Assembly: GCA_965235115.1 (NCBI GenBank)
Contig: OZ249437.1
Span: forward strand, 6,944,001 to 7,008,000
Direction: 5' to 3'
Length of the DNA stretch: 64,000 nt
Source: Laetmonice hystrix
Lineage: Eukaryota
Below, piece after piece: positions 15,701-62,580 of this stretch. A program made the position numbers and the translations under genes. The notes beneath the pieces are model-generated. The model was not told the origin of the DNA. It did no database searches and saw nothing but the letters and a program-made list of their open reading frames with translations. Each line of letters opens with the position of its first letter. Position 1 is the first letter of the stretch.

Positions 15701-15844
15701 GTTTTAGGTTTTCTTTGGAAATGTAGTACTCGGTGGCAAAGAACCCGCATGGTTTAAAAAAAGACAACGACCAAGAAGAAGCGGTAATGTAAGGCTGTAA
15801 GTGCATCGCCTTAGACTTAAGTACGTGTCAAAGGCTGCAGGATT

Positions 15845-21048: not shown

Positions 21049-22819
21049 TTAATAACCTCCTCGGTCCGTTTCCGGGTAGAAGATGATTACATGAATTCTG
21101 ACTTAATATGTAAGCCTGTGGCTTGATGTTCCAGCGTGTGTGAGTGTGTGGGTGGGTCTTGTGTAACTGTTCACATCACATGCCCGTCGGTCTAATGTCC
21201 CTGTAAGCCGCAAATTAAGTCCTTCGGAACAGCTAATTTATCACCGACGCTTTGATAGTGAAGCCATCAGACAGGTGGCGAGTCGGTGGTACGTACTTTT
21301 CATCGTGAACAGAAGCTTTCTCTCCGCCACCGTGATAAACATTTACCTAGTTCTGACATGCCCATTCAAGCCGAATCAGACGGGTCCGTGGTTGTAAAGA
21401 GAATATGATCAGCCAAGACGAATACTCATTCATTAATTCTCTTCATTCTGTCGATCTGTAATACTTTGTGATAGGACTCATTTCATTGTTAATCCTATAG
21501 GAACGGTTGGATGAGTCGTTAAGACTGAAAAAGTACCTCGTTCGATTTCTAAATCTTTATGTTAAAGAGGTACCAAATTATCCAAAGCCTTCTTGCTGGA
21601 ACTTAATCCAATGTCTGTAATCCAGCATAATAGATGGGTTAGGTGTATTCTGACCTTACACCAAGGGGAATCTAATGGGCAATAATAATTGTTGTGACAT
21701 TTGTTGTGCAGCTCATAAATTATTATTGTATGGTATATCACACGCGAGAATATAATTATTCTCACCTAGCTCATATAGAACCAAAATGATTATAATCACC
21801 ACAATGAAAAGGATGCACCTCCTTTTCATTTATTATTGCACCAGAATATTCTACATTTAAGGAATAATATATAATATTTTACACATTACGGTTAGATCAA
21901 TGTATACGATGTACAAAAACAAAAAGGTGCTTGAAATACGTATTTTCTAGTTGTTATATTATGATGTCAAAGCTGCCAAAATACGGTTATATAACACTAA
22001 ACATGAAAGTAGTGTCTACCTATAATTGGTAATACTGGATCCGTCAAATTGTGGTCAAGGTCATAGGAATGTCAAGGTTATACAAATATCATAGCAGGTC
22101 ACACCCATGACAGATGAAATATAACAAATAATGAGTGTGCAGCAGGAAATTTATCATACAGACACAGCCCAATATGGTAAAACGATTATTTTCATCACCC
22201 AAAATTACTTCCTAACACTTTTACATAGTATAAATCAAATCAGGTTGTCCTATAGCCAGCCTATAATATTACAACGCAGCCTCCCCCCCCCCCCCAGGTT
22301 ATTTTCACACCTCAAGTGAATTCACTGACGGCCTTTCTTACGGACAGACCCCTAATTTAATCACCTTCACCGTAACAAGATTTCGGCAACTTCTTACAAC
22401 TAAAGGAATAAATCCATTCACAGTCCAAAGCAAAAATACTCCCCTGTTACTTTGGGTTTCGGCGAAAATGCAACGTAATAACCCCACTGAGGGCAGTATT
22501 CTACGAGTCTCCCTGTACGCACCCAAACAGTAAATGCCGTACGAAATCACATAACACGCCTAAAATCCAGGCTTCTCCTGGGAGGTCATTGCAAGTGAAC
22601 ATTATGGGACAGAAATATGAGCAGCACATGTCTGCAGCCGTAGTTCTGCGCTAGGGGAGGCGTCATTCTGAGGTAACCTTTCCATCCATCTCAACAAGAC
22701 TCCTCACTCCCCTTCTCTGGCAAACCAACCCTTGGCTGGCGCGTAGGCAAAGAGGGTAAGCCGTCAAAATATCCAAGGTCGGACATTGCTTTGTGTAAGG
22801 TCATGACGACTGTTGTAGT

Positions 22820-24570
22820 TTGCGTATTGACACATTGACCTCTGATCATCTAATCGATACATCAATGTCATTCGGTGGGACATCCGGGGGCTTGTCAGTA
22901 GCCGGTCTATATCGGCAGGCAGGTAATTTGTACGCGGGGTGGAGTCTACCGTGGGAGACGGTGGAGGTTACAATCACACACAAGGCGACACTCCTAGAGC
23001 ACATGCTCATTGCCAACGTTTCGATAGTCTCATCAAAACCGTATTTGTCAGTTGGCTCTCGGCACCTGCGGCACAGCATGGCGGCAAAACAGCTTCGCTG
23101 GCTCTCGCCGCTCGCGAGAAACTGCGATACACGACACCGGCTTAGAATATCAAAGTCGGTGGACGCTGAAGTACGCGCCTACTATAAGACAATCTTCAAA
23201 TCCCTACAGCAGTAAAATACACCCAGCTAAGCGGGCAGACCGGCAAAGTTATTCCCACATCGCTGATGAGAGGAGGGAATTCACAGTCAGGAATACCTGG
23301 TTTCTCCACAAAATATCAGGTTTTTGAGGAGATACGCAGGGCTAACCCCACGCAATAATCTCTCCACCGAAAAAAAGGTCACTGGTTTGATCCAAATAAC
23401 CCCCGTCCCTCCCCGGACAAAATTATGATAGAGTGTGCATAAAGAACGACGCCTGCCCAGTCTGTGCAGTTTAATGGAATTGACACAGGTGACCTCGCGC
23501 CTACCTGTATAGGCCCGAACTGTGCACTGAAACACCTCTTTGTCAATACCCCATCAAAAACCCCCACCATCCTGACTCCTTTGTGGGGCCCATATTTCAG
23601 CTTGCCGTCGCGCACGTGCGCCGTTATAACCCCAACAGCAGAACGTAAGAACCACAATCGACCCTTTGATTTTAAGATTCGCTACCCTTTTCCTTGAACC
23701 AGAGCGTTTCGATTAGCTGCCCTTTTTTTAGCAGAGAGTCGAGACAAAGAAGCCCCGTCGCCACCTCCTCAGTAATGTCGCAGATTACGCCCAGTATTAC
23801 CGTCGCGGGCAGACGTTTATATGACTTGCGTGTCACAGTAAAAGCAGCAAACGCGCCGGTCCGTCGCAAGCGCGATATTTTGCCAACAGGTCACCTTCCC
23901 CCCGTACGGAACCAATGTAAATGGTTTCCTTTCTCGACGCACCACATAAAACAACGCATGTAGGGGCGAATTCGACCTGACAGATAGGCTTCAGCGAGGC
24001 GCTCCCGTCAGACCGCAGACTCAGGCAGACCTTGCTAGCTAGTCTACGCCGGCTGCAGTAGCAGTAGCAGCCACATGGTCGGGTTCCAATGACTGCCAAG
24101 GAAATTCCGGCCGATCCTAATCAATTGAGTTCTGTACCCGTGCGCTATCCGTTCATTCACAGATGCTGCGGATCATCGTAGGCACCGGGCGGCGTTACAA
24201 GCAGAGCGGCGACCGAGGTGAAGATCTCAGGCGGCGGCGGCGCACCTTGGGTTGACCAAGTATCGTCGGTGCTTCACTACAACTACAAACACGCACACAC
24301 AGAGCGTGGTGACGACAGGACGCACGTTGAAAGGGGAGTTCGCCACTGGTATACAGGCCTCTTCGCCCGGCGCTTGTGCAACTGTTGGATTACTCTTTAA
24401 CAAGCAAGCTTCGTTCGCAATCGTCTGTCAGATGTGCTGGTTGATCGTGGTCGCCATCGTCAACTCGGTGGTAGCGTATTCCACCGGTACCAAGGAAACC
24501 CGGCAGTTAGGTGAGTACCAGCACCTGTTACCTGTTCTCTTCCTCCGGGAGACTCAGTTACCTTAGCGTC
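22820..24570 (+). promoter_or_regulatory. CpG-rich segment spanning the putative 5' UTR and first coding exon
   Basis: Visibly GC/CpG-rich against AT-rich flanks and contains the exon 1 candidate. No TSS can be assigned from sequence. Confidence 0.35.
24432..24510 (+). CDS. Putative first coding exon, signal peptide MCWLIVVAIVNSVVAYSTGTKETRQL
   Basis: First in-frame ATG after an in-frame TGA (24219-24221). Hydrophobic core ending in V-V-A. Strong donor TTAG|GTGAGT at 24510/24511, phase 1, matching exon 2. Lies in a CpG-rich segment. Confidence 0.6.
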
Positions 24571-27500
24571 CTTAGTGCAACACGCTATACATAGTCAAAG
24601 TGCATGGGTCCAGCCTTTCCTGGCTCTTGTTCTGGGTACGTCTCTTAGCAATGGTATCGAGGCCTTGAAGAGCTGGTTATGCGTTTAAAATGAAATATCC
24701 TTGGCATGTTCTGTAAAAGGTAAATTTTCAATTGCAAGATATATTTTCCTTAAACAGGACGAGATTAGATTTATTGTTTTGTCATATGAAGTCGTTATGA
24801 TGTGATTAGTTTTGGATGTAATAAAAATCATTATCATCAGTACGATCATATCATACTTAAAATATAATCTTCGAAATGAATCCATTCAAAGAAAAATATT
24901 CCATACAATATTTCACGGTTGTACTTGGAAAAGTGAAACTTATTTATGTATTCNNNNNNNNNNNNNNNNNNNNNNNNNNNNNNNNNNNNNNNNNNNNNNN
25001 NNNNNNNNNNNNNNNNNNNNNNNNNNNNNNNNNNNNNNNNNNNNNNNNNNNNNNNNNNNNNNNNNNNNNNNNNNNNNNNNNNNNNNNNNNNNNNNNNNNN
25101 NNNNNNNNNNNNNNNNNNNNNNNNNNNNNNNNNNNNNATCTCAACTGTTTAGTGCGGCTTATCATTCATTACATGTGCATTATTAATTCCAGATGTTTTT
25201 TTTCAAATTAATTTCCTTGTACATGTATAACCATGTCGGCTTACATTCTATATATGTGTATGTTATTTCGAGAACAGAGCTGGTCATACTAAACTTCACC
25301 AGTTATTAATCTTACTTATTTCTTCTCGGATACAATACTTAGTTTGCCATTGGAATTATGAGTGATATCCTGAGAAGGTCACATCCTCCACCTCCACATA
25401 GTTTGTCCCTATTGAAAATACCACTCACTAATTTGTATTCAGACCATACAGATCTATAACGCATCACTGCTGTCAATCATCTAAACTGTGTATAACAAGC
25501 AGGAAACTCCACGGAACCTCAACAGTGCTGTCTATACACGGAATATCTTGTGATACAGACCTCGTACAATATGCATAGCCGTCATGTCTAGCTGCATGTG
25601 CGTTTGTATAGGCATCCTGGCGCGTGACCCCCAAGTTATTTTAGAACGTGTGTTACCTCAAAGTCTAAGTCGTTACCCATCAAGAGCCTCCTGTTTCAAA
25701 CGGGAATCCTGAAAGGGCCCAAGGGCTGGTTCAGCTTTGGGCTCTCCATTTCGCTGGAACAGCAGCTAATATATTCCCAGTATGGGAGAGGAGCACTGAG
25801 GTAGCATGGATGCGTTCCATTCTAACACGTCTTTAACACGATAAGAGATAGCGTAAGGTGCAGATGGTCCTTGATGGCTGGGTGCTGTGAGCTGTTCGGC
25901 TAGGGGAGGGGGTGGTTGGAGGGGCAAGGTACATCATCAGTTTTCCACGGGTTAGAGCCTCCCTACCAACGTTAGTAAGGAACCACCGCATTTCCTAATC
26001 CATCAGACCATTTTCCGGTCGACGAGCTACGATAAGCTGTACGAGTATTCAGTTCAGTATAATTTATTACAAAGTATGACCTAATTATCTGGGGCTTTTG
26101 TCGCGCAGGATTCAAGGATCAAATCATCAGGGACTTCAAAGAGAGGAAGGGGATCCTGCCTGAGAAAACAGCGGAGGCTTTGTGAATGACGGCATATTAT
26201 CTTTTTGTTTCTTTTTAGGCGTCATCTGAAGGTGTATCGTGTAGCTCTAGGTAATCTGGCGTAGAACTACAAATGTGCCCATGCATTTTGTGTTTTAATA
26301 AATCTCTTTCATCACGGCAAACTTCCACAAACAAATGACACCGAGCGTGTGTCGACTCATTATTGAAGTCAATATTTGGTGAACGTGTCACGGATAGAGT
26401 TTTCTAGGGGCCATTTCCTAATGAAAATTATTCTTACGCAATCTCTTAAAAACACACAAAGAATAACTTTAATGTAAACGATTTTAACAGCATATGTGCA
26501 AAATTTCAAAAGTAAACGCCGCGATAATGAGCCTACATCTGTGTCCATATATTGATTGAAGATATTATCAATTCCAGTAGAGTGAGTTGCACTTCACACA
26601 CTTTCTGATTACTTGAAATGGGACTCTATTGAGTTGTTCAGCGGGACGAACTAATACCAGTTGATACGTTATTTTAGAGTTTCAGGTGTTACGTTGAATC
26701 AGCTGGTATAACCTGGTAACCAACAGAAAGCTGTACACATGGTGTTCCTTCTGTATGTATTCAGTTAATTCATATAAATTTGGGGATAATCCGCTATACC
26801 AGAATGTATACCACGTTTAAGATTTGCCTACACGTTTCAATACAGCGCGTGGGTTCAGGCAACGCTGTAACGCAAGACAGATTACGAGAAAGCAGAATTC
26901 AAATCGAAAACTCGGCGTAGTAGATTGGGGCCACATGTGGCTGTGACCCGAGGAACGTGACGATCATACACGGGCTCTTATCGATCTCCTTGCTGAGATA
27001 TGATCACACATGGCGGATATAGACACGTGCATTTAACCCCGCTGAACTGTTGTCTTTTCGCGAGCGTTCCGCTGTCAGGTTTGAAAAGTGTGCAATTCAC
27101 GTGGCGCCTTGTAACCACGTGAATGCGGGTTTGTGGTCATGGCCGCCTGCTGTCACCCAGCGTGTGGACAGAATGCTTTTGTTCGTTCTAAACGACAGGC
27201 ATGCATGTCAGGCTGAAACATTGCCCAGTGCGCTTGGAGGCAGGGTTACCATATCTATTGAGGGTTCAACGAAAACTCGATATCGGAGTATTATAATTAA
27301 TAATTTTATATTAATTATACTTTATTAATTTAAATTTATATTATATTAAATATAAATAGATTTTTCATAAAACCATACTCCAGGAAGGTTGTTGATATAT
27401 ATTGAAAACGCAAAAATGAATAAAAAATCTCAAATGTGACCTTGCAAAAGCAGTTAATCGATACAATTATTTCAATTAGCTGTATCCCTCAAAATACACT

Positions 27501-30500
27501 GGCAGTAAAATATTTCTGCCTTTATTAGATGGACCCTCGTCAACCGGCAACAGATCAGGGACATTCGAGTCCTTGTTATATCATTTCAGAACCTAATGCA
27601 TTCTGTTGTGGCTTGGAATGCCAGACACCTTGGCGTCAAATCACACCATTTAAAGATTGATTCCATCTATCCCTTGTGCCTTCAAACTGTTGAGCTGTGG
27701 TTGACATTTTCTTCTGTTTGCTTTGCGATTGAAAAGTCACTGAGTCCACTCGTTTATCATACAGACATGTACTGATATAGATAATGGACAATCGTCCCTG
27801 TGTATCAATGGACTATCGTCCCTGTGTATCAATGAACTGTCGTCCCTGCATATCAATGAACTATCGTCCCTGTGTGTCAATGAACTATCGTCCCTGCATA
27901 TCAATGAACTATCGTCCCTGTGTATCAATGAACTATCGTCCCTGCATATCAATGAACTATCGTCCCGTGTATCAATGAACTATCGTCCCGTGTATCAATG
28001 AACTATCGTCCCTGTGTGTCAATGAACTATCGTCCCTGCATATCAATGAACTATCGTCCCGTGTATCAATGAACTATCGTCCCTGCATATCAATGAACTA
28101 TCGTCCCTGTGTATCAATGAACTATCGTCCCTGTGTATCAATGAACTATCGTCCCTGTGTATCAATGAACTATCGTCCCTGTGTATCAATGGACTCTCGT
28201 ACCTGTGTATCAATAGACTATCGTCCCTGTGTATCAATGGACTATCGTACCTGTGTATCAATGAACTGTCGTCCCTGTGTATCAATAGACTATCGTCCCT
28301 GTGTATCAATGAACTATCCTCCCTGTGTATCAATGAACTATCGTCCCTGTGTATCAATAGATTATCGCCCCTGTGTATCAATGAACTATCGTCCCTGTGT
28401 ATCAATGGACTATCGTCCCTGTGTATCAATGGACTATAGTACCTGTGTATCAATGAACTGTCGTCCCTGTGTATCAATGGACTATCGTGTATCAAGTTTG
28501 ATACATGTGAAATGTGATAAATTGGTCCAGACAGACATTTATTTTAACAGTAAGGTGAGTTATGGTCTGAGGAGATATTCGGGGGGAGGGGGTAAGGGAG
28601 GAGGGTGATGAGGAAGGGTGGAGGAGAAGATTGAGCGGGGGTAGTACACTTGGGCAAGGCTATACTGTGGACGTATTCCTACAAAAAGAGGGTTGAGTGT
28701 GCCTTATGATGTTCACTACCGTGGCCTCGGCGTGAGGCCTTACAGATCTATGGGCAAGGCGGGGCGGGATCCTTGTCATTCTGACCTCCGGGGTCACGCT
28801 GCTCTTGGCAAAGTGCACCGTGGAGGATCGGATTTGACCCTGCAGACCCAAAGCTTTGACCCGATTCCTCACAAGTAAAATGGCCAAAGGCCTACAGCGA
28901 GTTGGCCCGCCCACGGGGGTCGATTACATGTCACGGCACGGGTTGGACGTATCGCCATGTTGGTCCTCAGGTATGGGTGCGGGGAGGGGCGTCAAACTCG
29001 CGCGGACTGGGGGGGGGGGTGGTTGGGGGGTGGGGGGGGGGTGGTTGGGGGGTGGGGGGGGGCTGCGAATCCGCCAGATGGGCTGCTGGCACTGGACTGC
29101 ATTAATGACCAGATTCCTACTGGTATATCGCGTCGACGTGTATCTGTGAAATACAAAATGTGTTTCGTAAACCAGGCCTGTAGCCAAAAATATCAGCCTT
29201 GTCAGTTTTCAGCCAAGGGCAAAGGAATCCCTGGCTACGCTCCACTTTCCCCTAGGAGAGCTTTTTAGCCCCCAGCCCAATTAGGCGGCAGCTTCTAATA
29301 TGACCTCCGTCTGTATGTCCGTCCATATACGTACGTCCGGCCGTCCCTCCGTACGTCCGTATACCTCCCCACGTACGTCCTTAGACAGCGAGTGTAGGGG
29401 TCAAATTGCATGAAACGTTACGTTATTACCAGGGATGGTCTGAGGATGATGCGCGTCATATAGTTTTCCCGTATCTTTCAAAATGGCCACAGGGCGGCCA
29501 TCTTGTACATATAAACACATTTCACTCAAAGAAAAACATTTGGATTTCTTTCAAAATTTTAAACAGTTTATTTTCGGTTCAGACGCAATATGGCGACATG
29601 GCGGCCATATTTGTTATTTGACCCCCATAGTAAAATGGTTAGGATAATGCAGTAGTTACTATTATTGACAGCTAGGAAGTTATATATGATCTTTCACTTG
29701 GCGCCATTTTCCATGACCTTGAGTGACCTTGAAAGAGCAAACAAGGTCACACATATTTCCAATGGTCTGTATCTCCAAAACATTTAGGGGGTTGGGGGGG
29801 GGGGGGGGTTCTGCATGTTTGGTTTGAAGCTTTCAAGCCGAAAAAAGACCTTTCCCTCCGGATCCGCCACTGGACTATATCAAAAATACAAAATACAAAA
29901 TTAATAGTTCCTATACCCACGGATAATAATATTAGTTCATGTCCATGCGGTTGGCAATTGTCACTCCGACTCCGTCTTATTCTCAAAAATATATTGTTTT
30001 AGATATTATTATTCATCCTGGTAACTTTCATTTCCCATTCGGACTTACTTTCTATGTTCTGTGTCTCGTAAAATCCTTGACCCACCGGAGAGTACAAGGC
30101 AGTACTGCATTTATTGGTATACCATGAATCAATGCCGACATTGAGATATCGGCCGTCCTGGCGGCCGTCTCGGGGAAGTCTTACTTCCAGCGTTGATCGC
30201 CCAAGGTCCCGTATACCATTCAATCTAGGTACTTTCCATGCACGTCGCTCGGCCCCAGGTATCCCCACCCCCCTAAACACCGGGGATCATTTAGAAATCT
30301 CCGCCACTCCTCTTACATTCACCGATATGAACGGCTCAACGTCATTCAACAGATATGGTACCCCTTGATATACTCTACTCAACATGCATGCTTAGACTTC
30401 AGTAATGTTGAACAACTTTCCTACGTACAGGCGTATTATACCAAGTACAATGTCCGAAATTCTAGTAGGCTATATAAAGTCACAGTTGAGCCCAGTCCTA

Positions 30501-51500: not shown

Positions 51501-54500
51501 ACTCGGATGGCATTGGATAGAGAAGGTTTGGGCCTATCAGAAACACTTGGTAACTTATATCTAGTTAGTATCACTTCCTCGAGAAATGATGATATTTCCG
51601 GATTTCGTTTTATTTCTGAGACGTCCTGTATAGGTCGCGACTAAAGAGACCACACCTGCAGCGCCCTCTGTAGTCAGTAATGGCGTCCACACCCTATAAT
51701 CTTACATACCCCAGTACTTCCCACCTCTTAAATACGCTTGTTTCGTCGAGCCTCATCATGGCAATCACCTATTGGATTTGAAACAGCATTCCGTCCATCG
51801 TGTGTATTTACATAAAGACTAGATTGACCAAGTTAGATCAAGGAGATGCGTGAACTACTGTGCTGTCTCGCATGAAATGATATTCTTTTGTTTATTCTGA
51901 ACGTCCAGGTTTTTTTTGCACTATATGAGTTATTAATGCGTGGTGGAGCTGACATAGCTTTAGATCTATTCCCATCTGTAGGTGGGATAGTGATAATATA
52001 TCAGTCATTCGATGGAAGAAAAAGAGTTTATCAATATTCCTATCGAAAATGCCAACTTGTTCTGGTAATACTAGTACCTAAATACTTATCTGTCAGGGTC
52101 TCACTGTCTCCGATACCGACAGTTGTCAGGCGCCTGTCGTAATAAATTGTTCTTCACATGTGCTAGGGTGTGACCATTTCCAGTCTGTTTGGAATTATTG
52201 TCGGCTGTTTATAGTACATTGTACTCTTATAAGTTCTAGTCAAATTCCAGTCTCCATTTTCAAATTAAAAACAACCATGAAATGTATCCATGACAACGTT
52301 AAAAACGACATATCACTGTGTGACCATCTGCTTGTATATATTTCCGGTTAAAGTGCTCCTATATATTCCCAGTCTCTATTTACAAATTAAAGGCAGCCGT
52401 TAAATGTATCCATGACGACGGTAAAAAAAAGTCCAATCATAGAATTCATGTTTATGAATATGATGGTGTACACAGTTAGTCTGTGACTCACCGCAAAGGT
52501 GACTAAGATCTAAGATCTTAAGATTTTAGGAACCAGACCCTGGATTGCCTACAATGCTCACCAGATCAGTCGAGCCTCAGATGCTCGTCAGGGACGTGTT
52601 GAAAGGCACAACTTCAGCTTGAATTTAAAATGGTTTTATTCTTTGAACTATATGCAGCTGCTCGTAGAAAGCTGCTCGCAGAAAGCCCTGGCACCAGCGT
52701 AATGAGATGGTGGTTGTATTTTTGTGTGTCTGAACACATTGTACAGTTACAGTTCCTTTAAACAACGTGTCTCTTGTTTCAGTGGAGACGAGTCGAGGGG
52801 AGACGTGTCCAAGTCGGGGTCACTACGACATCAGCGAGTCATCTGGTTACTTGTCCCTCGGGCCAAGAGAGCTGACAATCGGCACGTCATCATGCCCCTG
52901 GTACATTCACATCCAACCAGGCCAAAGATTGGTGTGGACTCTTTACGACTTCAACGACATAGGCTATAAAAATCAACTCAAAAGCAACACTCCGAAGTGT
53001 CCTTACTCGTTCAAGTTCCTGGAGGGTGACGCTGAGGTGGATGTCCCCGTGTGTACAGGTCGACAACGGGAGAGTGAAATATATACTACACGTAAACATC
53101 ACGTCAAAGTTTACATGCTCAGCCAAACACCGGGACGCAACCCGGCAACATTCCTTCTTAATTTCCGAGGTGAGTAAGAGATAGAGGAGAATTTTATCCT
53201 GTCCCTAACCGGTAGAATACATCTTATTGTATCCGGTACCGGGGTGGTAAGCCTGAAGGCAGGAGCCGTCCATCTCTGGTTAGTCTATGCCTTGGTCTAG
53301 GCCCTGTTCCGACACGGTAGCACATTTACCGCATTTTTCACTATAGTTCCCTTGGAGCGGGTCTGTTTGAAAAAAAGTATATTAAAAGGGAAATAGTCTG
53401 CTCCTCTTGATAAAATGCACCTTGAATTCATTCTGTTCAATACTTTTACACTTGTTCTTCCTACTTTATAAATACGGGTAGTTACCCTGACTATAGACCC
53501 CGGGTGGACACCCCCTTGCATTATGTACTCAGCTTTCCGTTCTTTCTTTTCGTACCCCCATTCTCGTCAGTGCTCTCTGGTTCGACCCTAAGGTGGCCAA
53601 GGACTGGGGTTGCTGCTCCTGCCTGTTGTCCTTGGGTTTCCACACCCAGTCACTGCACCAGCCCCCTCCCCCCCCCCCCACCCTCAATTAACGGTTCCGT
53701 TAGGGTCTCTGTAATAAGGACTTGCGTTAGGCTCTTACACTACGGCAACAACCAGCGTCATATCGAGAAGGTTAGACAGAAATACCAGGAGAAACCGGAG
53801 TAACCGGTAAAAACTTCCGACCTGCAGCAGGTAAATGAAACCCACCTCACACAGAGGGATTTGATGCACCAAAGGTGAGAACCTCTAACATTACAAGCTG
53901 AGCCATTGCGCCCCTAGCCCAATGCAATGTGTCACATTCTGTCTATGTGCTAAGTGCCACATGGTAAAGGATCCTTGCCACTTAATTATGGATCAGCGTG
54001 TCCTTGTGAACGGGTTTCATCCATTCCGACATCATGAGAAGATGGACTGAGACCGTTGAAATGGTCATCTGATCGCCATGGTGGTTGGATCCCCATAAAG
54101 TGTAACACATCTCAAGCGTAGATCACTGATCATCAATGATTTACGACCTATGGGTGGTTCGAGCGTCAGACATCCCATGGAATACCTCTGGCACCACCCC
54201 ACCCCCACCACCACCGCCACCACCACCACCGCCACCACCACCACCCACACTACCCCTACACCCACCTGAGATGCAAATCTTAAGCAAGACTTTAATCCCC
54301 GATCTTAAAAACAGGGCGGGGGTGGTTTATGATAAATTTGGCACAAAGCAACTAATCTTTCAATCAAAAAGGCGTATTTAATATCAAGACCCGGGTTCCT
54401 GGTGGAGCTTGAGCCGAGATTTATACTGCTCAAGCTAACGAGCTGTGAGCTTGAAGCACTTACGGATTGTGAGCTTGAGCAGTAAATGTCCATACAAGCT

Positions 54501-57500
54501 CCTCCAAGACAGCCCGCCCAGGAGTTACATTCAGTCGGTGAAGCAATCTACAATATACTAGCACCTAGATATATCTACGTTTTTTTCCTGTCCATGCGAC
54601 TAAACATCTTGAACAGATACACTCCCATCCATTAGAAACAAGTGATAGTGGTAGTTGTTGATGGCACGTTTCTATCTCACTACATCCCAGATCATTGTCA
54701 TACGGTACAATAAGTAGATTTATTCAATGTTTTCCTAAACATAATGACCTAAGAAGGTGACACAATGTTTAGCCGTCACTCTAAAAATCGAACTCAAGAA
54801 TTCCATTAATTTAGTAAATGGCAAGAAAATCAGACTGACGTTTTGAAATACAATCCATTCAGACCATTTAAGTAAAACCCAAGTGATATATAGGCGTCGC
54901 GTCGATTACATATTGATTATATTATTTCAGTGCAGTTGTGCAAACTCTATACAATGACAAGTGTCACCTGTACAGAGTGCACCATGAAGAAGAATATCTG
55001 TTTTTAATCACTATGATTAAAAGTGCGCCGACTTGTCTGGATATTCTGCCTGTAAAACACCGTTTTTATTTTTAAACTATTGTCAGAACTCTTTTTCAAA
55101 GCTTCGTATATTTGCTTTATCAAAGGCCGGCCGTGTCACGATATGTCTATGTGGAGGTGCACGTCATGCAAGCACCCCCTCAATTTGCACAATTTTTTTT
55201 GGGTGCGCCCACAGCCCCCTCCCAATTTGCAGCCTACGACGTTGGTTATTTCCAGCACCCCCCTGGGTCCAGTTATTGGGTACGCCACTGACCCAATGGA
55301 TTTCACCAACTGAGTTACCTTGTTCTCGCCCTGAAATAGCTGAAATACTGCTGACTGGGCGTTAAACACCAACTACTCACTCACTCACTCACTCACTCCC
55401 CCAAAGCTTCATTCTACACTTGCATCATCGACGGACGCCTCACCCGTGATGTCTTGGAGGCGGCGACTCTCGGGGCAAGGAGACGCTATGCCCTGGGTGA
55501 CTGAAACCGAGGAGGCGCTATGCCCTGGGTGACTGAAACCGAGGAGGCGTTATGCCCTGGGTGACTGAAACCTGTGGCCTTGGGCCCGCCTCTAACCCGA
55601 TTGTTAAGTATTGTTAGCAAATATCCCCCCCCCCCCGTCCTCCCACTCAACCTTCCCCCTCCCGCACCCTGGCACTGTAGGTCCGCCCCTGTTTGCAAGG
55701 GAACAAAGGCCTTTCTTTGAAACCATATCTCCTCCACAGCGCGTGTTGTGGTGTCCTGGTCGGTGTTGAGTACTACACATATATCCAGTAGAGGGGGTGG
55801 GGGAGGGTTTGCTGAGCTGACGAGCACGCAATTTGCATTGTCTCTGTCCTATCCTTCACGATGCTGGCTGTGGCCTTGTGGCGGATTTCCCCCCGTCGTC
55901 GTAGATACACAGGTGCGCGCATGTGTCGGTCGGTTTTACGGTGGCATTCGAATCAAGGCTGGTCTCCTTCCCATCAAAACACCCCACATTGCCGCCGACG
56001 TCAGCCCCAGACCAGCCAGTGGCAACACAACCCGGCGTGCAGCTTCCCGACAGTCGATAGTTGCGCACCAAAGCACATGGTGGCTTTCTGGCTCCACCGG
56101 GACTCGCTTGGCCCAGCCCTTCAAAGCTTTGTGGAGAAACAGAGGACTTGAGAGACGATGGGAGGAGATGGGGGTGCATGGCAAATCGGGTTTGAGAGGA
56201 GGGGGTTTGTCAGGGTTCAGACCGTTACGAACTGCGTGTATCGAACGCTATCAAATACATGACTATAACTCAACACGTGTAAGTACTACAAGTGTTTCCC
56301 TAACGAATTACAACTTAATGTGTGCAGTAAGATCGACAATAGGCTTATATAACGGCACCTTGAATTGCAAGTATATACTTGAAGATATACAACGCAAGAG
56401 CAAACTGTGCCTGCATGCGTCCATGCGGGGTGGAGTCGCAAACCATTCGTATAACATGTGACAGGTCGGTTACAAGGTCGTGATGACTGAGTGACACGGG
56501 CAGTCAATGTCACAGCTATTGACTGATAGTTTGTGGGTTTCTTACTCCCACTCGCTTGTGACGTCCCACGGCCGTCAATAACGTTCGCTCCTTTTCGAGG
56601 TGAACTGGCTCCGTAAAAGATCATAAGATCTACCCTTTCACTACAGGGATCGGGTTGTGAACAAAATCTGCGGTATTGGTTTTCATCAGATCATGTTTTT
56701 ATCTTCATTGACTTGAAACCTCATCCATCTTACATGAACTGCACGGTAAACAGCCAAGCCGTATTAGCACCTAAACGGTACCTAATCTATACAAGGTCAT
56801 GAACTGAATAAACCGCGATCATTAAAAAAGACATTCGAGAGGGCGAAGATAAACTTGAAAGCCATGCATACACAGATATCTCTTCATCTGTATTTGCAAC
56901 TGTCATTCTCACAATGTACTTTTAGTAAGAGCACGCCACAATGTCGACTGAGGAATGAATCGAAGATCTAATGTTTCTTCCTCCGTAAAGATTATACGTA
57001 GTTGTCAATATCTTCCATGTCTTACAACGATGTTCCTTCTTTCTAAATTGTATTACCTCTCGCTCAGTCGGAAAGTGGAAGCAAAGACAATGACAGATCG
57101 CTCGTGGCTCCACGTAATGTGTGCAGCAGACGTTGTCTTTGATGGCGCCCCCAGCCCCTCTCTTCCTTCCCCGCTGATGCTTGTTGTTACACAAACCGTG
57201 TAAGCACCCTAATGTGCCCACGTATCAACGTATCGACCTTCGTTGTTAATCTGCTACCTTTTTCATCCTTTGGCCCTTATCTATGGCACTTAAGGATATA
57301 CTACTTACAGATATATGATTCGGTTTGTATCTTTCAAGGGACATTGTTGATGTTTCCTGTGATGAGAGAGACGAGAAAGGGTTTTTTTTCTAAGACTTGT
57401 ATTTGTTGCTGTTTCAGCCGTAGGATGCCCTGACTTTCTACCCGTGGCCGATGCTTGGATCCGCCGCAGTGAAAGTACAGCAGTAGTTGTCTGTAACAGT

Positions 57501-60500
57501 ACACGAGAGACTTGGCACTTCGTTTGTAGAGACAACTACTGGGTAGGGGAGCTTAGGAACTGCACTCAGGGTAAGTATCAAGAAGATGCACACATGAATC
57601 CATTAAAAGCAAAGTCTATATACACATACATGGTATCTGTGTAACTATAAGAGATTTGTGTGTGCAGCTGCTAAGTTGAAAGGAATAGACATATCGCTGT
57701 CGTTGTTTTTAAGCAGTATGTTCCCTCAAGCCAGACTGGAATCGATACCTACTTAGGTCTCAGTTTATATCTGTTCTGGCATTGCGCCTCTTCGTGTGGG
57801 ATTTCAAAAAGGATTACATGTAGGCTTCTCGTTATATTGAACCATGGCTACCTTAGGCATACACCCGGCGATATGGACCTGGTCGTCATAAAAATCATTT
57901 AGCCTGCAGATTTTCTCTGAAGCAGGGTGCGCAGTTAAGTGTTATTTTTTTCATGCTTACAGACCACAGTCTGTACTATTCCCCATTTTAGTCGTTCATT
58001 AACATTTCTGGCAATCGTTTCCACCAGAGGAGACCTGCGACAACAGCCAAGGGACATGTTGTGCAGTTATCAAGGATGTTAATAATATATTATTAGTACA
58101 CAGCCTGTATTGTTATCAGCGCATGTCATCAAGCCACGGTCGTCACCCCACCCCACCAATACCCACCCCACCCCCGCCTCCAGCCGGTACACGCCGTCAC
58201 TACACGCGGTGTCTGACAGATCAAAGATCAAACATCAATACACCTGCAGTCCGCAATAATACACAGAGACTAAATTTTAACCTGAGTTGAACTGATCTAT
58301 TATACAGCCGCTTTGGAAGACGATCAATTATTTAGAAAAAAAAGGGTCACGCCATATACTTGGATCTCTATCCATGGAGTCGTGCACGGAACCGTTGTCA
58401 ATGTCCACAATACTGGGAGAGGGGGGAGGGTCGTGGTTTCGATAGGGTGATGGGAATATGATCTCAGGAGATCACCGGGAGGAGCACTAGCGGGGTGTGC
58501 ATAGATTGCACAACCATTGTGTCCCGTCTATTGATTCCCAAGGTCGAGTCCATCTGGCAGAAGAGATAACATTATTACATTCACGATTTTATTGGGTTCC
58601 TCACGATTCTGTTGGCCCCTCCTGACGACCCAAATGAAAGAAAACTGTAATGCACTGACATAGCGCGTGTACAAATCGGCAGCATTGTGACCATCTGTCG
58701 GGTAAAAGTATTAGCGCGATGAAGAGTCCACCCTAACTCATTAATACACAAAACGATCTAACGAATCGCATTGACCAAACTCCATTCAGGAGAATGAACC
58801 TGCCCGCTTGGAACGAATTTTAGCAGTCTGTATTCTATTTAATTCATAAAAATGTCATCAAAGCGTTCGCATTACGTGTAAAAGGGTGTGTAGCGTAGGA
58901 AATCGCTTGCATCCAAGTACATCGGCAGTGGTATTCTTTGTATTTTTACAGTGTATCTCTTGTATTTTTTACAGTGCCTAAAGCGGACGTGATAACAGCG
59001 GCCGGAGGTATTCGATACACTTTACACTATGGTGAGCATGAGTAGGCCTGCTGTCCGGCACCAGTTTTACTTTGCGTTTAAATGTAATAGATTTCCATCA
59101 GTTTGCACGCCATTGGAGTGTTCATTGCCATTCAGTATAGAGGCGATTCAAAGTACCGTACTTTAAACCTAGAACGCATCGATATGGTTAAATTGTTTTT
59201 TAGCTTGCAAGTTGTGTAGTTAGAGAAAACAACTTGGCAGTGCATGACTTGTCTTTGGTGTGAAAGGACAGTTTTTAAAAATATAGCTCCTATAGACAGA
59301 AACACTTTTTTTAATATCGACTATTGGTAGATTTGATTACTTGCGATGAATACACCTTTAAATTACATTCTTCATCTAACACAATGCTTTATTAACGTCG
59401 GTGCCTGAGAGAATGTACTATCCTCACCGCGCTTCCCTACATTGCTGTTGAACACTTCCATGCCCACGTTTCCCGTTTGAAGTTGGTTAAAGCCTATTTA
59501 ACATGGATGGTGAATCGCAGTAATACCATTTGCCTTGATTCATTATGCCTGAGGAATTGCGACCGGTCAGTCTGTTTGGATGTATAACTCAAACTCACGC
59601 CGAATGTTCCAAGCATCAGCCGGGCTGTATGGGAAGATCTAAAGATCAAAGAATACTTATCGCAATCTCGCTTTGGCGCCCAACCAAAGCTTCGCGCTGC
59701 GTTGCGCTGCACTTAAGATTCACCCGAAGATCAAACGTATGGAAGAATATCCCCCCTTCTGGGGACGAAGACTAAGGGTGAATCATTAAACAACCACTTT
59801 GAGACATTTGCCATTTAATTTGTTGATTGGCCTTTTGCTAATCATATAGAACGCTGCGGCCTAAAAGGTTCCTTAGGACAATTTTCTCTACTTCCAGCTA
59901 CATACACGAACGAATTTTACTTGTTTTATTTTTCTTCGTTCTTCCCATATAGCGTGTTAATGTCGTATCTTAGGATATAGAATTACGTCGCTGGATTTAT
60001 TTTAATTTGAATAATTTGCTAAAGGCATATTTCTAGATATAATGGTTTCAATTAGATTGCCTGGAATTCGATGCATGCTCATCTGTATAATTTTAATTAG
60101 ACCCATCGAGAACGGGATCTATATAAGTCGTTTGGATGTACATGATGTGTGTCTGTCTGTGTGTCTAAAACAGTGAAGTGATCATGTTTACAGGTATCCT
60201 ACTGGCAGTGGCCCTGGGCCTCGTTCTGGGAATATTCTTCGGTGCCATACTTCTCGTGTGCATGTTCATCCACAGAGTTCGGTAAGCATGACGTGCCGGT
60301 TGCCAGAGGTTAGCAATCAAAGCGATATATTTTATGTCGTTTTCCTTCATACGGTTCCACGCATAGATCTACCAACACATGGCATACTAAGATATTTGTG
60401 GACACACAAGTGTCTGTTTCACTCCTTACGCTCTGTTCGAAATTTACCAGCCATTACGTTATGATGTCTCGTTGTTTGAATGACAAATATTCTTCATTCT

Positions 60501-61993
60501 GATCAGTGGAACTCTTCTCTATGCGAGGAGAAGATAGTGTAAATGACGTGCTAGAAAAACGTCGCTCATTAAAATGATTGCAGTGAATAGATCTATTAAA
60601 AAACACGTTGTGTGGAGAAATCTTCAATTACTTCCCTGACTGGTCGTGACCAGGTAGTCGGCAGAGTTTGTGTATATAATGAGGCAGCGCCATGCATGTC
60701 AATAACTATACAAGTGTGGCCATGGCTCTTCATGCTCCTCATTTATTTACTGTCATCATTTCTCCTGGCGATTCGTTTTGGAATACATGTAATTGGAGAT
60801 GTATATAGATTTGAAGTCTGGCAGATCTTGCAACATGCGAACATGCGAATTCTCATCTCCTTAAAACGACATCATTCTTGTATAGTCGTATTTCTTTTAC
60901 CTCAGATATAGGTATATACATCTGACAAGACTAAATAGCATGTTTCATTCTAAATGTTGTGCGAAATTTAATAATTATGAATAATTATTCGTGTTCGTTG
61001 GAAAACTCTGGAAGTGTATTTGGAGAGTGCGTGTTGTCTGAACGTGAATCCTTTGATCCGATGATATACCTCACTATTTCAGAAAAGAAAATGTCTGTAA
61101 GAAACATCCATTTATAAAAACGAGATGAAAGAGATAGGGCCACAATAGACACAGCAATCTACGTCATTCCTCTGGCACAAACAACATACATTTTATACAT
61201 ATATCCGATCAATTAGCTTGACTACCTACCTATAGTGCCGATTACGGCACGATATCGAACAGCGGTCGTGTAGAGGGCGAGGGGGGGCGCAAGTCATAAT
61301 AAATCTTAAATATCACACAAGTAGGTGTTCCGAATTCTGCCTACATAATAAATCTGATATATGTCGGTCTATTTAATGTGTATCAGGAAGCGGCATCGGA
61401 AGCGCCTGCGCCGCACGGACAGGGACCTTCTGCAGGGTGAATCGCTCGAAGACAAAGAGGCTGTGTCCATCCCCCTCCGCCACGGGGATCACTTTGATAG
61501 CAGCACGGGCGGCTACATGACGGACGACCCCAACAACGTCTGCAACCATACCATGCACTTCCAATTCCCTACAGAAGACTTGCCTTCCAACATCGAGGAC
61601 GGCCCGGATATCATTTACGCGTCACGCATGAACATCCGGTGTCAGAACAACTGTGTCGCCTGCCAAGGCCCCCAGGTTCTCGGTGTTTCGGGACTCGGGA
61701 TGGGAAGCCACCGCAGGAACCACGAGACAGTTTTAGCTAATACTACGACCCGGGTTGGTCAGGAGAATATATACGGTACGCGTAACGCACCTGCCAATAT
61801 CTACGGTACGAGAAACGCACCCGATAATATATATGGCACTCGGCGAAGCCAAGAGAATTTGCTGAATGGCGCGCCCACAAATAGGACTCTTTCTTCCAAT
61901 CAAACGAAGTCCAAGGACAATATCCAAGACCCAGGGAAGCGTATGCTGTACTCGACAGAAGGAATCGATCGGCAAGTAGTGACTACACTCTAG
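24432..61993 (+). CDS. Spliced gene for a 554-aa type I transmembrane receptor-like protein (SP - SUEL lectin-like - CUB-like - sushi-like - TM - Tyr-repeat/PDZ-motif tail); join(24432..24510,48274..48567,52783..53169,57418..57570,58975..59031,60194..60281,61387..61993)
   Basis: Exons were located manually and all introns are GT-AG. Intron phases run 1,1,1,1,1,2, and the joined frame is open over 1665 nt. Domain order is coherent. Exons 2-7 are well supported; attachment of exon 1 is less certain. Confidence 0.8.
24954..25137. other. Assembly gap (184 N)
   Basis: Run of N within intron 1. Confidence 1.
27795..28490. repeat. Minisatellite, 24-bp unit (tatcaatgaactatcgtccctgtg), about 29 copies
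   Basis: Direct inspection. Confidence 0.98.
29262..29750 (+). mobile_element. Non-autonomous Helentron-associated (HINE/DINE-1-like) element fragment
   Basis: TTTTTAGC start, then a (GTCC/GTAC)-type microsatellite, the palindrome atggccacagggcggccat, and tgaccttgagtgaccttga motifs. This layout is typical of HINEs. Confidence 0.6.
32060..32365 (+). repeat. About two diverged 130-150 bp tandem units resembling HINE internal repeats
   Basis: Repeated ttgtaaatggttgaa...ataggaagtcatata...caccattactt...tgacgtcatcaggaga...agggctataac. Confidence 0.65.
32571..33358. repeat. Minisatellite, 71-bp unit, 11 copies
   Basis: Unit acaccttaccctgatagtgatggtgggttggtggtttcaagtcatgccggtaacggttgggtatcttcaga; period checked at 32651/32722. 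Confidence 0.98.
34895..35625. repeat. Minisatellite, 19-bp unit (ccaccacagg[c/t]tctctctg), about 38 copies
   Basis: Direct inspection. Explains the 127-327 aa ORFs here. Confidence 0.98.
35885..36015 (+). mobile_element. Degenerate Deu/Nin-like SINE core
   Basis: cccagtg...gttatcaaaggtc...aagaacttgccatttatcgacaagag parallels 36392-36490. Confidence 0.5.
36300..36633 (+). mobile_element. tRNA-derived SINE with Deu/Nin-like central domain and (ACTC)n tail
   Basis: A-box-like gtggtcgagtgtct. Core taaaggaaccattgccattttcgaaaagagcaggggattgcctcccggtgg resembles the Deu-domain consensus as I recall it. Tail tcactcactcactc. Confidence 0.7.
36640..36850 (+). mobile_element. tRNA-derived SINE (family shared with 1-130)
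   Basis: A-box-like ggtggcgttggtccagttag, B-box ggattcgattcc (36707-36718), body similar to 1-130. Confidence 0.7.
39272..39337. mobile_element. 66-bp Tc1/mariner-type mini-MITE, probable relative of 51250-51628
   Basis: TA|CAGGGTGTCGCAAAATAATC ... GATTTTTTTAGACACTCAG|TA. Confidence 0.5.
41148..41280 (-). mobile_element. Degenerate tRNA-derived SINE (V-domain-like core)
   Basis: ggaaaccggagtacccgaaaaacc is the reverse complement of the conserved GGTTTTC..GGGTACTCCGGTTTCC SINE motif. Degenerate tRNA head adjacent. Confidence 0.55.
46916..47062. repeat. 50-bp tandem repeat, 3 copies
   Basis: tatatttggtaacgtagattgttcttaccgaatcatctccttgctgcttg at 46916, 46966 and 47016. Confidence 0.97.
47885..47985 (-). 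mobile_element. Deu/Nin-like SINE core on the minus strand
   Basis: aagaaacctgccaccgggaggcaatccctactcttttc is nearly the reverse complement of 36480-36525. Confidence 0.7.
48274..48567 (+). CDS. Exon 2: SUEL / galactose-binding-lectin-like domain
   Basis: Acceptor ttcattgacag|ATTTAG and donor CCAG|gtaggt; 294 nt, phase 1-1. Eight Cys plus the hallmark motifs ARYGRM, CSGRQSC, PC and YLEASYTC. N-glycosylation sequon NAT. Confidence 0.92.
51250..51628. mobile_element. 379-bp Tc1/mariner-type MITE with TA target-site duplication
   Basis: TA|CAGGGTGTCTCAGAAAAAAAGAAATC ... GATTTCGTTTTATTTCTGAGACGTCCTG|TA; about 27-bp TIRs, no transposase. Confidence 0.8.
52247..52430. repeat. Diverged tandem duplication, about 120-bp period
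   Basis: ccagtctc...caaattaaa...aaatgtatccatgac..cg.taaaaa occurs twice. Confidence 0.75.
52783..53169 (+). CDS. Exon 3: CUB-like domain
   Basis: Acceptor ctcttgtttcag|TGG and donor CGAG|gtgagt; 387 nt, phase 1-1. Motifs SGYL, CPWYIHIQPGQRLVWTLYDF and FLLNF, four Cys. Confidence 0.9.
53710..53914 (-). mobile_element. tRNA-derived SINE (V-domain-like core)
   Basis: Minus strand reads ggggcgcaatggctcagcttgtaa (A box), gcatcaaatccc (B-box-like), then ttttaccggttactccggtttctcc. Confidence 0.7.
53935..54060 (+). mobile_element. Degenerate Deu/Nin-like SINE core
   Basis: ctgtctatgtg...taaaggatccttgccactt...cgggtttc. Confidence 0.45.
54192..54260. repeat. (CCA)n/(CCG) trinucleotide tract
   Basis: Direct inspection. 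Confidence 0.9.
54393..54515. mobile_element. About 120-bp palindromic MITE-like element
   Basis: Outer arms gggttcctggtggagcttg / caagctcctccaagacagccc. Inner arms ttta(ta)ctgctcaagct / agcttgagcagtaaa. Confidence 0.5.
55330..55397 (+). mobile_element. SINE 3' end with (ACTC)n tail
   Basis: ctgaaatagctgaaatactgctgactgggcgttaaacaccaactactcactcactc; a Nin-like fragment lies upstream at about 55115-55150. Confidence 0.6.
55484..55572. repeat. 32-bp tandem repeat, about 3 copies
   Basis: cgctatgccctgggtgactgaaaccgaggagg at 55484, 55516 and 55548. Confidence 0.95.
57418..57570 (+). CDS. Exon 4: short four-Cys sushi/CCP-like domain (AVGCPDFLPVADAWIRRSESTAVVVCNSTRETWHFVCRDNYWVGELRNCTQG)
   Basis: Acceptor ttgctgtttcag|CCG and donor CAGG|gtaagt; 153 nt, phase 1-1. 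Pattern C..C..C..W..C, sequons NST and NCT. Confidence 0.88.
58975..59031 (+). CDS. Exon 5: 57-nt stalk exon (VPKADVITAAGGIRYTLHYG)
   Basis: Acceptor tgtattttttacag|TGC and donor CTATG|gtgagc; phase 1-1, open frame joining exon 4 to the TM exon. Confidence 0.75.
60194..60281 (+). CDS. Exon 6: transmembrane helix (GILLAVALGLVLGIFFGAILLVCMFIHRVR)
   Basis: Acceptor atgtttacag|GTA and donor TTCG|gtaagc; 88 nt, phase 1-2. About 25 hydrophobic residues followed by basic residues. Not shown in the ORF track in this frame. Confidence 0.88.
61387..61993 (+). CDS. Exon 7: cytoplasmic tail to stop codon
   Basis: Acceptor gtgtatcag|GAAG, phase 2, joining to give the polybasic stop-transfer RKRHRKRLRR. 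Frame is that of ORF 61361..61993. Contains 3x NIYGTR and ends QVVTTL-stop. Confidence 0.88.
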
Positions 61994-62204
61994 TTCATGG
62001 TCACCCGGATGTATACCGAAGGTTTGCACCACTATGTCGTCCATTATGCTACATATTGTGATTTCGTTCATTATTAAATCGGAGGATTTTCTTTTCAATC
62101 GGCCCTTCACAGACCCGTGAACAAAACATGCCATGGACAGACTTATGAGTGCTTTAAAAGACGACCGGTTGATCACGTACCAATCCTCCTGTTATTATTG
62201 CAGC

Positions 62205-62580
62205 TGTGATTGGTGCAACAGACCAAATGATGATTGGTACCGTAAAAGTAATTGGACCAAGGGATCAATTGATGATTGGTTTCAGAATAGTTGTTGTACC
62301 AAGATAGCGTGATGATTGATCCCGTAAACATAACTGGACCATGGGGCCAATATTATTGACGATTGGGCTCATATTGATCTAAGATACCAATGAGTGATCA
62401 GTTACAACCAAGTGACCAATCGATGGCTGGTCTTGTACAAGTTTTTGGCCCAAGAGACCAACCGATGTGTGTACAGATTATTGGACAAAGACATCAATTG
62501 AGGATTGGTCTCGTGCAACTTATTGGACCATAGGCCAACTGATGATTGGTCCTGTTCAAGAGATTGACTGATGATCCCGT
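62205..62580. repeat. Degenerate 40-45 bp tandem repeat rich in ATTGG/CCAAT, downstream of the stop codon
   Basis: Recurring ttattggaccaaggga(t/c)caattgatgattggtc-like units. Confidence 0.65.

Follow-up and report, generated by a model that had tools for sequence, protein, structure and literature searches.

EVA-1/EVA1C (C21orf63), a co-receptor for SLT-1/Slit, is a single-pass type I membrane protein with a membrane-distal domain of the SUEL or L-rhamnose-binding lectin (RBL) type, and the latrophilins (ADGRL1-3 and LAT-1) also use the RBL/Lec fold on a receptor. A CUB domain followed directly by a CCP (sushi) module occurs in SEZ6, SEZ6L, and CSMD and in MASP, C1r, and C1s, of which SEZ6 is also single-pass. 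CUB ectodomains are likewise found on the single-pass proteins NETO1/2, SOL-1, and LEV-10, and NETO1 has a C-terminal PDZ ligand. Here, we characterize a gene that joins these modules in a single protein. It lies in a stretch of 64,000 nucleotides of the Laetmonice hystrix genome (assembly GCA_965235115.1, contig OZ249437.1, positions 6,944,001 to 7,008,000 of the forward strand), the whole of which was analyzed and is referred to as the window. The encoded protein consists of a signal peptide, one SUEL domain, one CUB domain, one short CCP-like module, a stalk, a transmembrane (TM) helix, and a cytoplasmic tail. The SUEL-CUB-CCP-TM combination is absent from the literature searched, yet it is present, without a name, in GenBank.

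The window gene differs from each of the described systems. EVA-1 combines a pair of SUEL domains with an EVA1 (FAM176) region and lacks CUB and CCP modules, whereas the window gene has one SUEL exon; its tail gave no EVA1/FAM176-type domain in Pfam (E ≤ 1), and there is no similarity to EVA-1 outside the SUEL fold. The olfactomedin, HormR, GAIN, and seven-TM regions of the latrophilins are all absent from the window gene, whose model comprises only one TM helix and no additional exons. The best structural matches are MASP and C1r CUB2 for the CUB domain and a MASP or C1s CCP for the CCP-like module. Compared with SEZ6, CSMD, and MASP, however, the window gene has one CUB domain, one 50-residue CCP module, and an N-terminal SUEL domain, lacks a protease domain and a repeated CUB-sushi array, and ends in an unrelated tail. 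NETO, SOL-1, and LEV-10 carry LDLa together with at least two CUB domains and lack SUEL and CCP modules, and their sequence relation to the window gene is limited to the CUB fold.

The closest counterparts are annotated proteins of other annelids, namely, NP493_62g04007 of Ridgeia piscesae, KAI0209181 of Lamellibrachia satsuma, ELT96967 and ELU10385 of Capitella teleta, and KAK2147095 and KAK2149906 of Paralvinella palmiformis. They have the same order of signal peptide, SUEL, CUB, CCP, stalk, and TM helix, with 30 to 41% identity over residues 30 to 362 (E values of 1e-38 to 1e-79), and they share with the window gene the cysteine pattern and a noncanonical SUEL loop 2. Their tails differ, being unrelated beyond a basic stop-transfer stretch.

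Gene structure and conservation

The locus contains an intact gene of seven exons that has been conserved in evolution and encodes a type I membrane protein of 554 residues. Four coding pieces were first located from the list of open reading frames (ORFs): a SUEL-type piece at 48.2 to 48.6 kb, a CUB-looking piece at 52.7 to 53.2 kb, a four-cysteine piece at 57.4 to 57.6 kb, and an open tail reaching position 61993. Splice sites were enumerated with the phase of each tracked, and together with a comparison to an orthologous locus this yielded seven phase-compatible exons on the plus strand at 24432 to 61993, which together comprise 1665 nt (554 codons and a stop), as follows.

24432 to 24510, plus strand: exon 1, 79 nt, start codon and signal peptide MCWLIVVAIVNSVVAYSTGTKETRQL, ending in phase 1 with the donor AG/GTGAGT
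48274 to 48567, plus strand: exon 2, SUEL/RBL lectin-type domain, 294 nt, phase 1-1, eight cysteines
52783 to 53169, plus strand: exon 3, CUB domain, 387 nt, phase 1-1, four cysteines
57418 to 57570, plus strand: exon 4, short 50-residue CCP/sushi-like module, 153 nt, phase 1-1, four cysteines and a conserved tryptophan
58975 to 59031, plus strand: exon 5, 19-residue stalk VPKADVITAAGGIRYTLHY, 57 nt, phase 1-1
60194 to 60281, plus strand: exon 6, TM helix ILLAVALGLVLGIFFGAILLVCMFI with GxxxGxxxG, followed by HRVR, 88 nt, phase 1-2
61387 to 61993, plus strand: exon 7, 201-residue cytoplasmic tail and stop codon

All six introns are of the GT..AG type, with phases 1, 1, 1, 1, 1, and 2. The donors of exons 1 to 6, all of them strong, are GTGAGT, GTAGGT, GTGAGT, GTAAGT, GTGAGC, and GTAAGC, respectively, and the acceptors are pyrimidine-rich CAG sites. 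Exons 2 to 5 are symmetric (phase 1-1) with one module per exon, which is the classic layout of shuffled extracellular modules. Exon 5 was detected as a conserved block within the intron between exons 4 and 6, which in both species compared is flanked by AG/GT sites and has an open frame, and its inclusion completes the count of 554 residues.

The main orthologue, from an annelid assembly in ENA (ERZ25767047; loci L020 to L023), has the same seven exons in the same phases and also encodes 554 residues; its exons measure 82, 294, 387, 153, 57, 88, and 604 nt, versus 79, 294, 387, 153, 57, 88, and 607 nt in the window. Amino acid identities between the two are 18% for the signal peptide, 82% for SUEL, 66% for CUB, 90% for CCP, 80% for the stalk, 90% for the TM helix, and 56% for the tail. 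Over exons 2 to 6, the proportion of synonymous differences (pS) is 0.80 (i.e., saturated) and that of nonsynonymous differences (pN) is 0.145, indicating that purifying selection has long acted on precisely these frames. Nucleotide similarity begins and ends at the predicted exon borders, exon 6 uses the same acceptor and donor in the orthologue, and a third species uses the same acceptor for exon 7. Residues 30 to 362 of the spliced model are collinear with the annotated Ridgeia (41%) and Lamellibrachia (40%) proteins (E ~1e-78), and the alignments are unbroken at the junctions. The model also aligns to two sequences (P0016 and P0153) that are uninterrupted ORFs on contigs of 3.2 to 3.6 kb, and these contigs therefore look like mRNA. 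One-to-one orthologues were found in at least three other assemblies; those that share the tail were found only in ENA and Logan assemblies.

Three sequencing runs, all of genomic DNA from one sample and probably the source of the assembly, gave continuous contigs over 57300 to 62300, with no joints in exons or introns. Since these runs are genomic DNA, the evidence for the splice junctions is entirely comparative. Two alternative features were rejected during modeling. The ORF at 60600 to 60911 (WPWLFMLLIYLL..., with the hydrophobic stretch VWPWLFMLLIYLLSSFLLAI), located between the TM and tail exons, resembles a TM exon and acts as a decoy for gene modeling; it was discarded because its donor is poor (ACT/GTCATC) and it is not conserved in the orthologue. 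An alternative acceptor of exon 6 at 60179 was likewise set aside, as conservation and the acceptor in the orthologue begin at the equivalent of 60194.

The original prediction for this DNA, made by a model from the letters and an ORF list, had proposed seven phase-compatible exons for a 554-residue protein with signal peptide, SUEL, CUB, CCP-like module, TM helix, and tail. Our independently rebuilt model has the identical length, and the proposed architecture proved correct. The SUEL domain was identified by sequence, and the CUB and CCP-like modules are supported by predicted structures.

Extracellular modules

The SUEL exon matched Pfam PF02140 with 33.8 bits over 79 of the 80 model positions, a narrow pass of the cutoff of 31.4 bits. 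Its best sequence match in PDB (phmmer) was the L-rhamnose-binding lectin 5h4s (2.7e-13), followed by the latrophilin Lec domains (E values of 1e-4 to 1e-3). It contains eight cysteines, as required for RBLs (PMC2430599), and the YGR motif (as ARYGR), which fits the RBL framework. Binding of rhamnose and galactose by the RBL domain of latrophilin-1 needs the Glu after the first core cysteine and a Lys in loop 2 ('KYL'), and any substitution at either residue, even a conservative one, abolished binding (Vakonakis et al., PMC2430599). In the window gene and its orthologue, this Glu is replaced by His and the loop 2 Lys by Ala; among the 13 family members checked, the Lys was found in none and the Glu in two. 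Receptor-borne RBLs often lack the two residues; they are also substituted in EVA-1, which suggested a protein ligand, and noncarbohydrate ligands were proposed for such domains (PMC2430599). Membership in the SUEL/RBL fold thus stands, and, judging from these residues, lectin activity is not expected. Without the canonical Glu and Lys, the domain is likelier to have a protein as its ligand or partner than a glycan containing rhamnose or galactose. The glycan recognition that had been suggested for this receptor is therefore doubtful.

The CUB assignment of exon 3 draws on relatives, a family profile, and a predicted structure. Two relatives scored against the Pfam CUB model with 23.3 bits (P0082; cutoff, 21.4 bits) and 19.4 bits (P0099). 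A profile of 60 family sequences (A1), when compared with PDB sequences, retrieved CUB domains only, with cubilin first (6e-12), followed by PCPE-1, enteropeptidase, ADGRG6, MASP, NETO2 (E value of 0.01), TSG-6, and C1r. The AlphaFold2 (AF2) model of exon 3 has a predicted local distance difference test (pLDDT) score of 86.8, and the top 28 Foldseek matches of this model were all CUB domains, with E values down to 1e-4 and TM scores of 0.5 to 0.6 (e.g., MASP-1 CUB2, with an E value of 1e-4 and a TM score of 0.56). The four cysteines lie at conserved columns, and the predicted structure is consistent with the two-disulfide beta-sandwich of the CUB fold. By eye, the CUB consensus appears to lack the usual 'YD' and 'SD' positions of the acidic Ca2+-binding triad found in ligand-binding CUB domains of the C1r, C1s, MASP, and cubilin type.

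Exon 4 gave no match to Pfam PF00084 at E ≤ 1 and none to PDB sequences; the corresponding family profile (A2) produced one full-length alignment in PDB, to a CSMD1 sushi domain (E value of 0.73). The pattern G-C-P..P...C..T...W.L.C....W.G....C, with four cysteines in a 1-3, 2-4 framework and a tryptophan before the fourth cysteine, is conserved in 19 sequences. The AF2 model of the module (pLDDT of 88.8) was compared with 48,161 chains in an exhaustive VIA structural search, in which approximately 42 of the top 50 rows were CCP modules (Z scores of 4 to 5.4, modest because the module is so small), with 50 of 50 residues aligned at a root mean square deviation of 2.1 to 2.5 Å. CCP matches from Foldseek and VIA included CD55, SPICE, MASP-2, C1s, E-selectin, IL-15Ra, CD46, factor H, and GABA-B R1a. 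A standard CCP has about 10 residues more than this module, for which 'CCP-like' is therefore a fair label.

The ectodomain contains 16 cysteines in total (8, 4, and 4 in the three modules) and three N-glycosylation sequons (NAT, NST, and NCT) that are conserved in the orthologue, and a run of ten basic residues follows the TM helix. These features fit a type I orientation.

Transmembrane helix and cytoplasmic tail

The GxxxGxxxG glycine zipper of the TM helix is present in 9 of the 13 family members. The tail encoded by exon 7 includes a polybasic juxtamembrane stretch, DRDLL, the block SIPLRHGDHFDS, a C-x-H-x2-H motif, a C-x3-C-x2-C motif, three NIYGTR repeats, and the C-terminal QVVTTL. An alignment of four species (A4) revealed the following invariant blocks: KRHRKRxRRxDRDLL, SIPLRHGDHFDS..GY, C-x-H-x2-H, GPDIIY, RC-x3-C-x2-C-QGPQVLGV, and the C-terminal QVVTTL. 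Within these, at about residues 380 to 455, lies an invariant region of about 70 residues with four cysteines and four histidines (RHGDH, C-x-H-x2-H, and C-x3-C-x2-C). The number of NIYxTR copies varies among species, with three in the window (61766 to 61855), five in P0177 (the closest tail orthologue), and two each in P0178 and P0179, and the flanking blocks are invariant. This variation looks like expansion and contraction of a repeat within the coding tail.

Tyr/PDZ signaling had been suggested for this receptor, and the conserved tyrosine repeats and class I-type PDZ ligand end of the tail would fit it. The QVVTTL terminus fits the class I PDZ ligand pattern (S/T-x-hydrophobic), the NIYxTR repeats with their variable copy number look like a tyrosine docking array, and the eight Cys/His residues may bind metal. 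We found no paralogue of the tail in this genome, and no match in Pfam (E ≤ 1), PDB sequences, or the ESM Atlas. One apparent tail match on contig C18 (L010; G000:C18:25726834-25729947) was spurious, being a satellite-like 30-nt tandem array with a 625-residue frame, (LTVGSTGQDV)n. Two relatives from other paralogue groups, P0082 (Paralvinella) and P0103 (Capitella), share tail motifs of their own (GEY.HIW..+.PIPVATP.VP and TF.TFKP), which indicates that other groups also have conserved, group-specific tails.

A family of related genes

Searches of the genome (627 Mb in 35 contigs) identified at least 49 matches to the CUB exon and at least 60 to the SUEL exon. All 49 CUB exons are preceded by a SUEL exon on the same strand, 0.4 to 19 kb upstream, and at the five paralogous loci sampled, the CCP exon is present as well, and neither exon order nor exon limits differ. 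The loci are clustered on contigs C2, C12, and C30; the window gene belongs to the largest cluster, which has 17 SUEL exons at 6.10 to 7.28 Mb of C2. Identity between paralogues is 41 to 58% for SUEL exons and 25 to 38% for CUB exons, versus 82% and 66% for the cross-species orthologue. The gene thus belongs, as an old paralogue, to a family of about 50 genes that is characterized by SUEL, CUB, and CCP exons ordered on one strand in phase 1-1, followed by a TM helix and a variable tail. Relatives of 475 to 625 residues have one TM helix each, and hydrophobic, PDZ-type C termini are common in the family. Long open frames at two paralogue loci (L011 and L012) were dismissed as tandem or low-complexity repeats.

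In searches that were not exhaustive for eukaryotic proteomes, the named relatives were all from annelids (i.e., Lamellibrachia, Ridgeia, Paralvinella, and Capitella), and they are labeled hypothetical, 'SUEL-type lectin domain-containing', or 'CUB domain-containing'. Our literature search returned no paper on the SUEL-CUB-CCP-TM architecture, the family, or the accessions of these relatives. The description of the gene as an orphan in the original prediction was therefore wrong in the sense of a gene without relatives, given at least 49 paralogous SUEL-plus-CUB loci and orthologues in at least three other assemblies. Its assignment to an uncharacterized invertebrate receptor family holds, the relatives all being hypothetical annelid proteins with accessions absent from the literature searched.

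Proposed function and alternative explanations

Taken as a whole, the locus is best explained as encoding a cell-surface recognition receptor with a protein-binding ectodomain and a signaling tail, a reading to which we assign a probability of roughly 0.55. As has been proposed for the RBL domains of latrophilin and EVA-1, the ligand or partner of the SUEL-CUB-CCP ectodomain would most likely be a protein, not rhamnose or galactose. Specificity would probably be set by the CUB domain, because no other ectodomain module diverges as much, whether paralogues or orthologues are compared. The TM helix, whose 90% conservation and GxxxGxxxG motif suggest helix-helix association, would probably drive dimerization or association with a membrane partner. 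The orthologue-specific tail would probably pass on the signal through phosphorylation of its two to five NIYxTR tyrosines, through the Cys/His block with its possible bound metal, and through the T-T-L PDZ ligand. Immunity, allorecognition, and axon guidance had been put forward as examples of what the receptor might serve. The old paralogues, the one-to-one orthology with purifying selection, and the conserved blocks upstream of the gene (described below) lean away from a fast-evolving immune function and toward one in development or in neurons, and we infer, weakly, that a conserved role of the latter kind may be the better fit.

Several points weigh against this reading. There is no transcript evidence for the gene in this species, the sequencing runs found being all DNA. 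The signal-peptide exon is poorly conserved (18%) and is separated from the rest of the gene by an assembly gap. Exon 3 alone gives no match to Pfam CUB (PF00431) at E ≤ 1, and the CCP assignment comes from a predicted structure with modest Z scores (4 to 5.4) and no match to Pfam Sushi. Despite the loss of the canonical sugar site, glycans might still be bound in another way. In the tail, the PDZ and metal-binding readings are pattern matches only, and we know of no SH2, PTB, immunoreceptor tyrosine-based inhibitory motif (ITIM), or immunoreceptor tyrosine-based activation motif (ITAM) consensus that fits the Y-G-T-R motif.

Among the alternatives, the one that survives best is a glycan-sensing receptor for immune or symbiont recognition, in which the SUEL domain would be a true lectin for microbial or self glycans and the family an expanded pattern-recognition repertoire. 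The confirmed SUEL fold, with a real L-rhamnose-binding lectin as its best PDB sequence match, is compatible with this idea, as are the large, tandemly clustered family and the CUB and CCP modules, which are typical complement-type modules; SUEL lectins are also among the candidate pattern-recognition proteins of an annelid (PMC5117596). However, the His/Ala substitutions at the sugar-contact positions, which are shared by the orthologue, and the absence of the Lys from 13 of 13 members argue against a lectin. Moreover, the paralogues are old, as judged by their CUB identities, and the one-to-one orthologues under strong purifying selection, together with the conserved upstream blocks, are unlike fast-turnover immune families. 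We consider this explanation unlikely.

Somewhat more doubtful is an auxiliary or cis-acting subunit of a channel or receptor, similar to NETO1/2, SOL-1, LEV-10, or SEZ6, whose ectodomain and TM helix would bind a multipass partner and whose PDZ ligand would anchor the complex at synapses. The position of the CUB-CCP unit next to the membrane, the unusually conserved TM helix with its glycine zipper, and the frequency of hydrophobic PDZ-type C termini in the family would all suit such a subunit. The nearest Atlas neighbors of a relative's ectodomain, as found with a protein language model, were SEZ6L, CSMD, and MASP clusters, but the score was weak (0.81) and lies within a range often reached by shuffled proteins. 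The LDLa module and second CUB domain of NETO and LEV-10 are missing, and the long tail with repeated tyrosine motifs suggests autonomous signaling.

Taken singly, the domains are ordinary: SUEL, CUB, and CCP are well-known extracellular modules, here on phase 1-1 exons typical of exon shuffling. None of the sources searched describes their combination as a membrane receptor. Distant annelids have kept it as an old gene family with about 50 members, for which one-to-one orthologues and conserved noncoding elements upstream are seen. Should these genes turn out to serve recognition or signaling, they would constitute a lineage-specific receptor repertoire in a phylum with almost no functionally studied cell-surface receptors, and they would add a further case of RBL domains reused for nonsugar ligands. 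A bolder and quite tentative extension is that the Cys/His block, the NIYxTR array, and the PDZ ligand form an undescribed cytoplasmic signaling module and that the approximately 50 paralogues, with a common ectodomain cassette and glycine-zipper TM helix but each with its own tail, make up an annelid-specific cell-surface recognition code (e.g., for neuronal wiring) in which the SUEL fold would bind protein instead of sugar. At the level of the single gene, the value of the analysis lies in a well-supported annotation and in motifs that are open to testing.

The 5' end and integrity of the gene

The link between exon 1 and the remaining exons spans the only run of undetermined bases in the window.

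24954 to 25137, no strand: assembly gap of 184 N, the sole N run in the window, within intron 1, noncoding

The gap begins 443 nt past the donor of exon 1, ends 23.1 kb before exon 2, and has AT-rich flanks; the 'ORFs' that the ORF list carries through it are runs of X. As no coding frame passes through the gap, frame continuity is not at stake, and what depends on the gap is the linkage of exon 1 to exons 2 to 7. It is improbable, on our assessment, that the 5' end of the model is partly wrong, with exon 1 belonging elsewhere or an extra exon lying in or near the gap, so that the true N terminus differs. Such an error is suggested by the position of exon 1, 23.8 kb upstream of exon 2 across the 184-N gap, by its low identity to exon 1 of the orthologue, and by the lack of RNA reads for the gene, the runs found being DNA. 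Low sequence identity is usual for signal peptides.

Opposed to this, exon 1 has an ATG, a hydrophobic core, and an AG/GTGAGT donor in the phase that exon 2 requires, and the orthologous locus contains an equivalent signal-peptide exon (L023:5431-5512), which is 82 nt long, ends in phase 1 with the donor AAG/GTAAGA, and encodes the hydrophobic leader MMLLHLLILHTSYLLSGSFGQENTQLQ (ending in ..ENTQLQ, versus ..KETRQL here). The orthologous locus is one gap-free contig, on which this exon comes shortly after the noncoding blocks that are also conserved in the window and precedes the SUEL exon by 12.8 kb. When compared with the window, intron 1 of the orthologue showed no further conserved block or exon between the signal-peptide and SUEL exons, and joining the two directly again produces a 554-residue protein. 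The annotated relatives also begin with a signal peptide a few residues before SUEL. The orthologous locus thus lends indirect support to the linkage of exon 1 to exons 2 to 7.

A silent or decaying copy in a large tandem family is very improbable: a few family exons elsewhere in the genome do carry stop codons and no RNA evidence accompanies the gene (the runs being DNA), but the frame is open through all seven exons and the splice sites are intact, the orthologue is of equal length with pN far below pS, and the tail motifs are invariant in four species.

Noncoding features of the window

Upstream of exon 1, four conserved blocks are collinear with the orthologous locus (L023:3023-4885).

22525 to 22692, no strand: conserved noncoding block
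22759 to 22872, no strand: conserved noncoding block
23023 to 23052, no strand: conserved noncoding block
24117 to 24166, no strand: conserved noncoding block

These blocks are 68 to 90% identical between the two loci despite saturated synonymous sites, and they contain stop codons and nontriplet indels in all frames. Such conservation suggests that they are probably promoter or cis-regulatory elements of the gene. A further block of 66 nt in the intron between exons 4 and 5 (58516 to 58581) is 82% identical to L021:14231-14293 and includes CATCTGGC.GAAGAGATAACATTATTA. It is not an exon, because it has stop codons in every frame; it may be an intronic regulatory element or a small RNA.

No convincing gene was seen in the 24 kb upstream of the window gene, where long tandem-repeat arrays at 11891 to 12991 and 15704 to 16647 carry repetitive ORFs on both strands. 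Intron 1 contains four tandem arrays.

27783 to 28488: tandem array, 24 bp x 29.5
32571 to 33358: tandem array, 71 bp x 11
34895 to 35625: tandem array, 19 bp x 38.5
46916 to 47062: tandem array, 50 bp x 2.9

The copies in these arrays match at 90 to 96%, and the arrays are the source of the long repetitive 'ORFs' in the ORF track.

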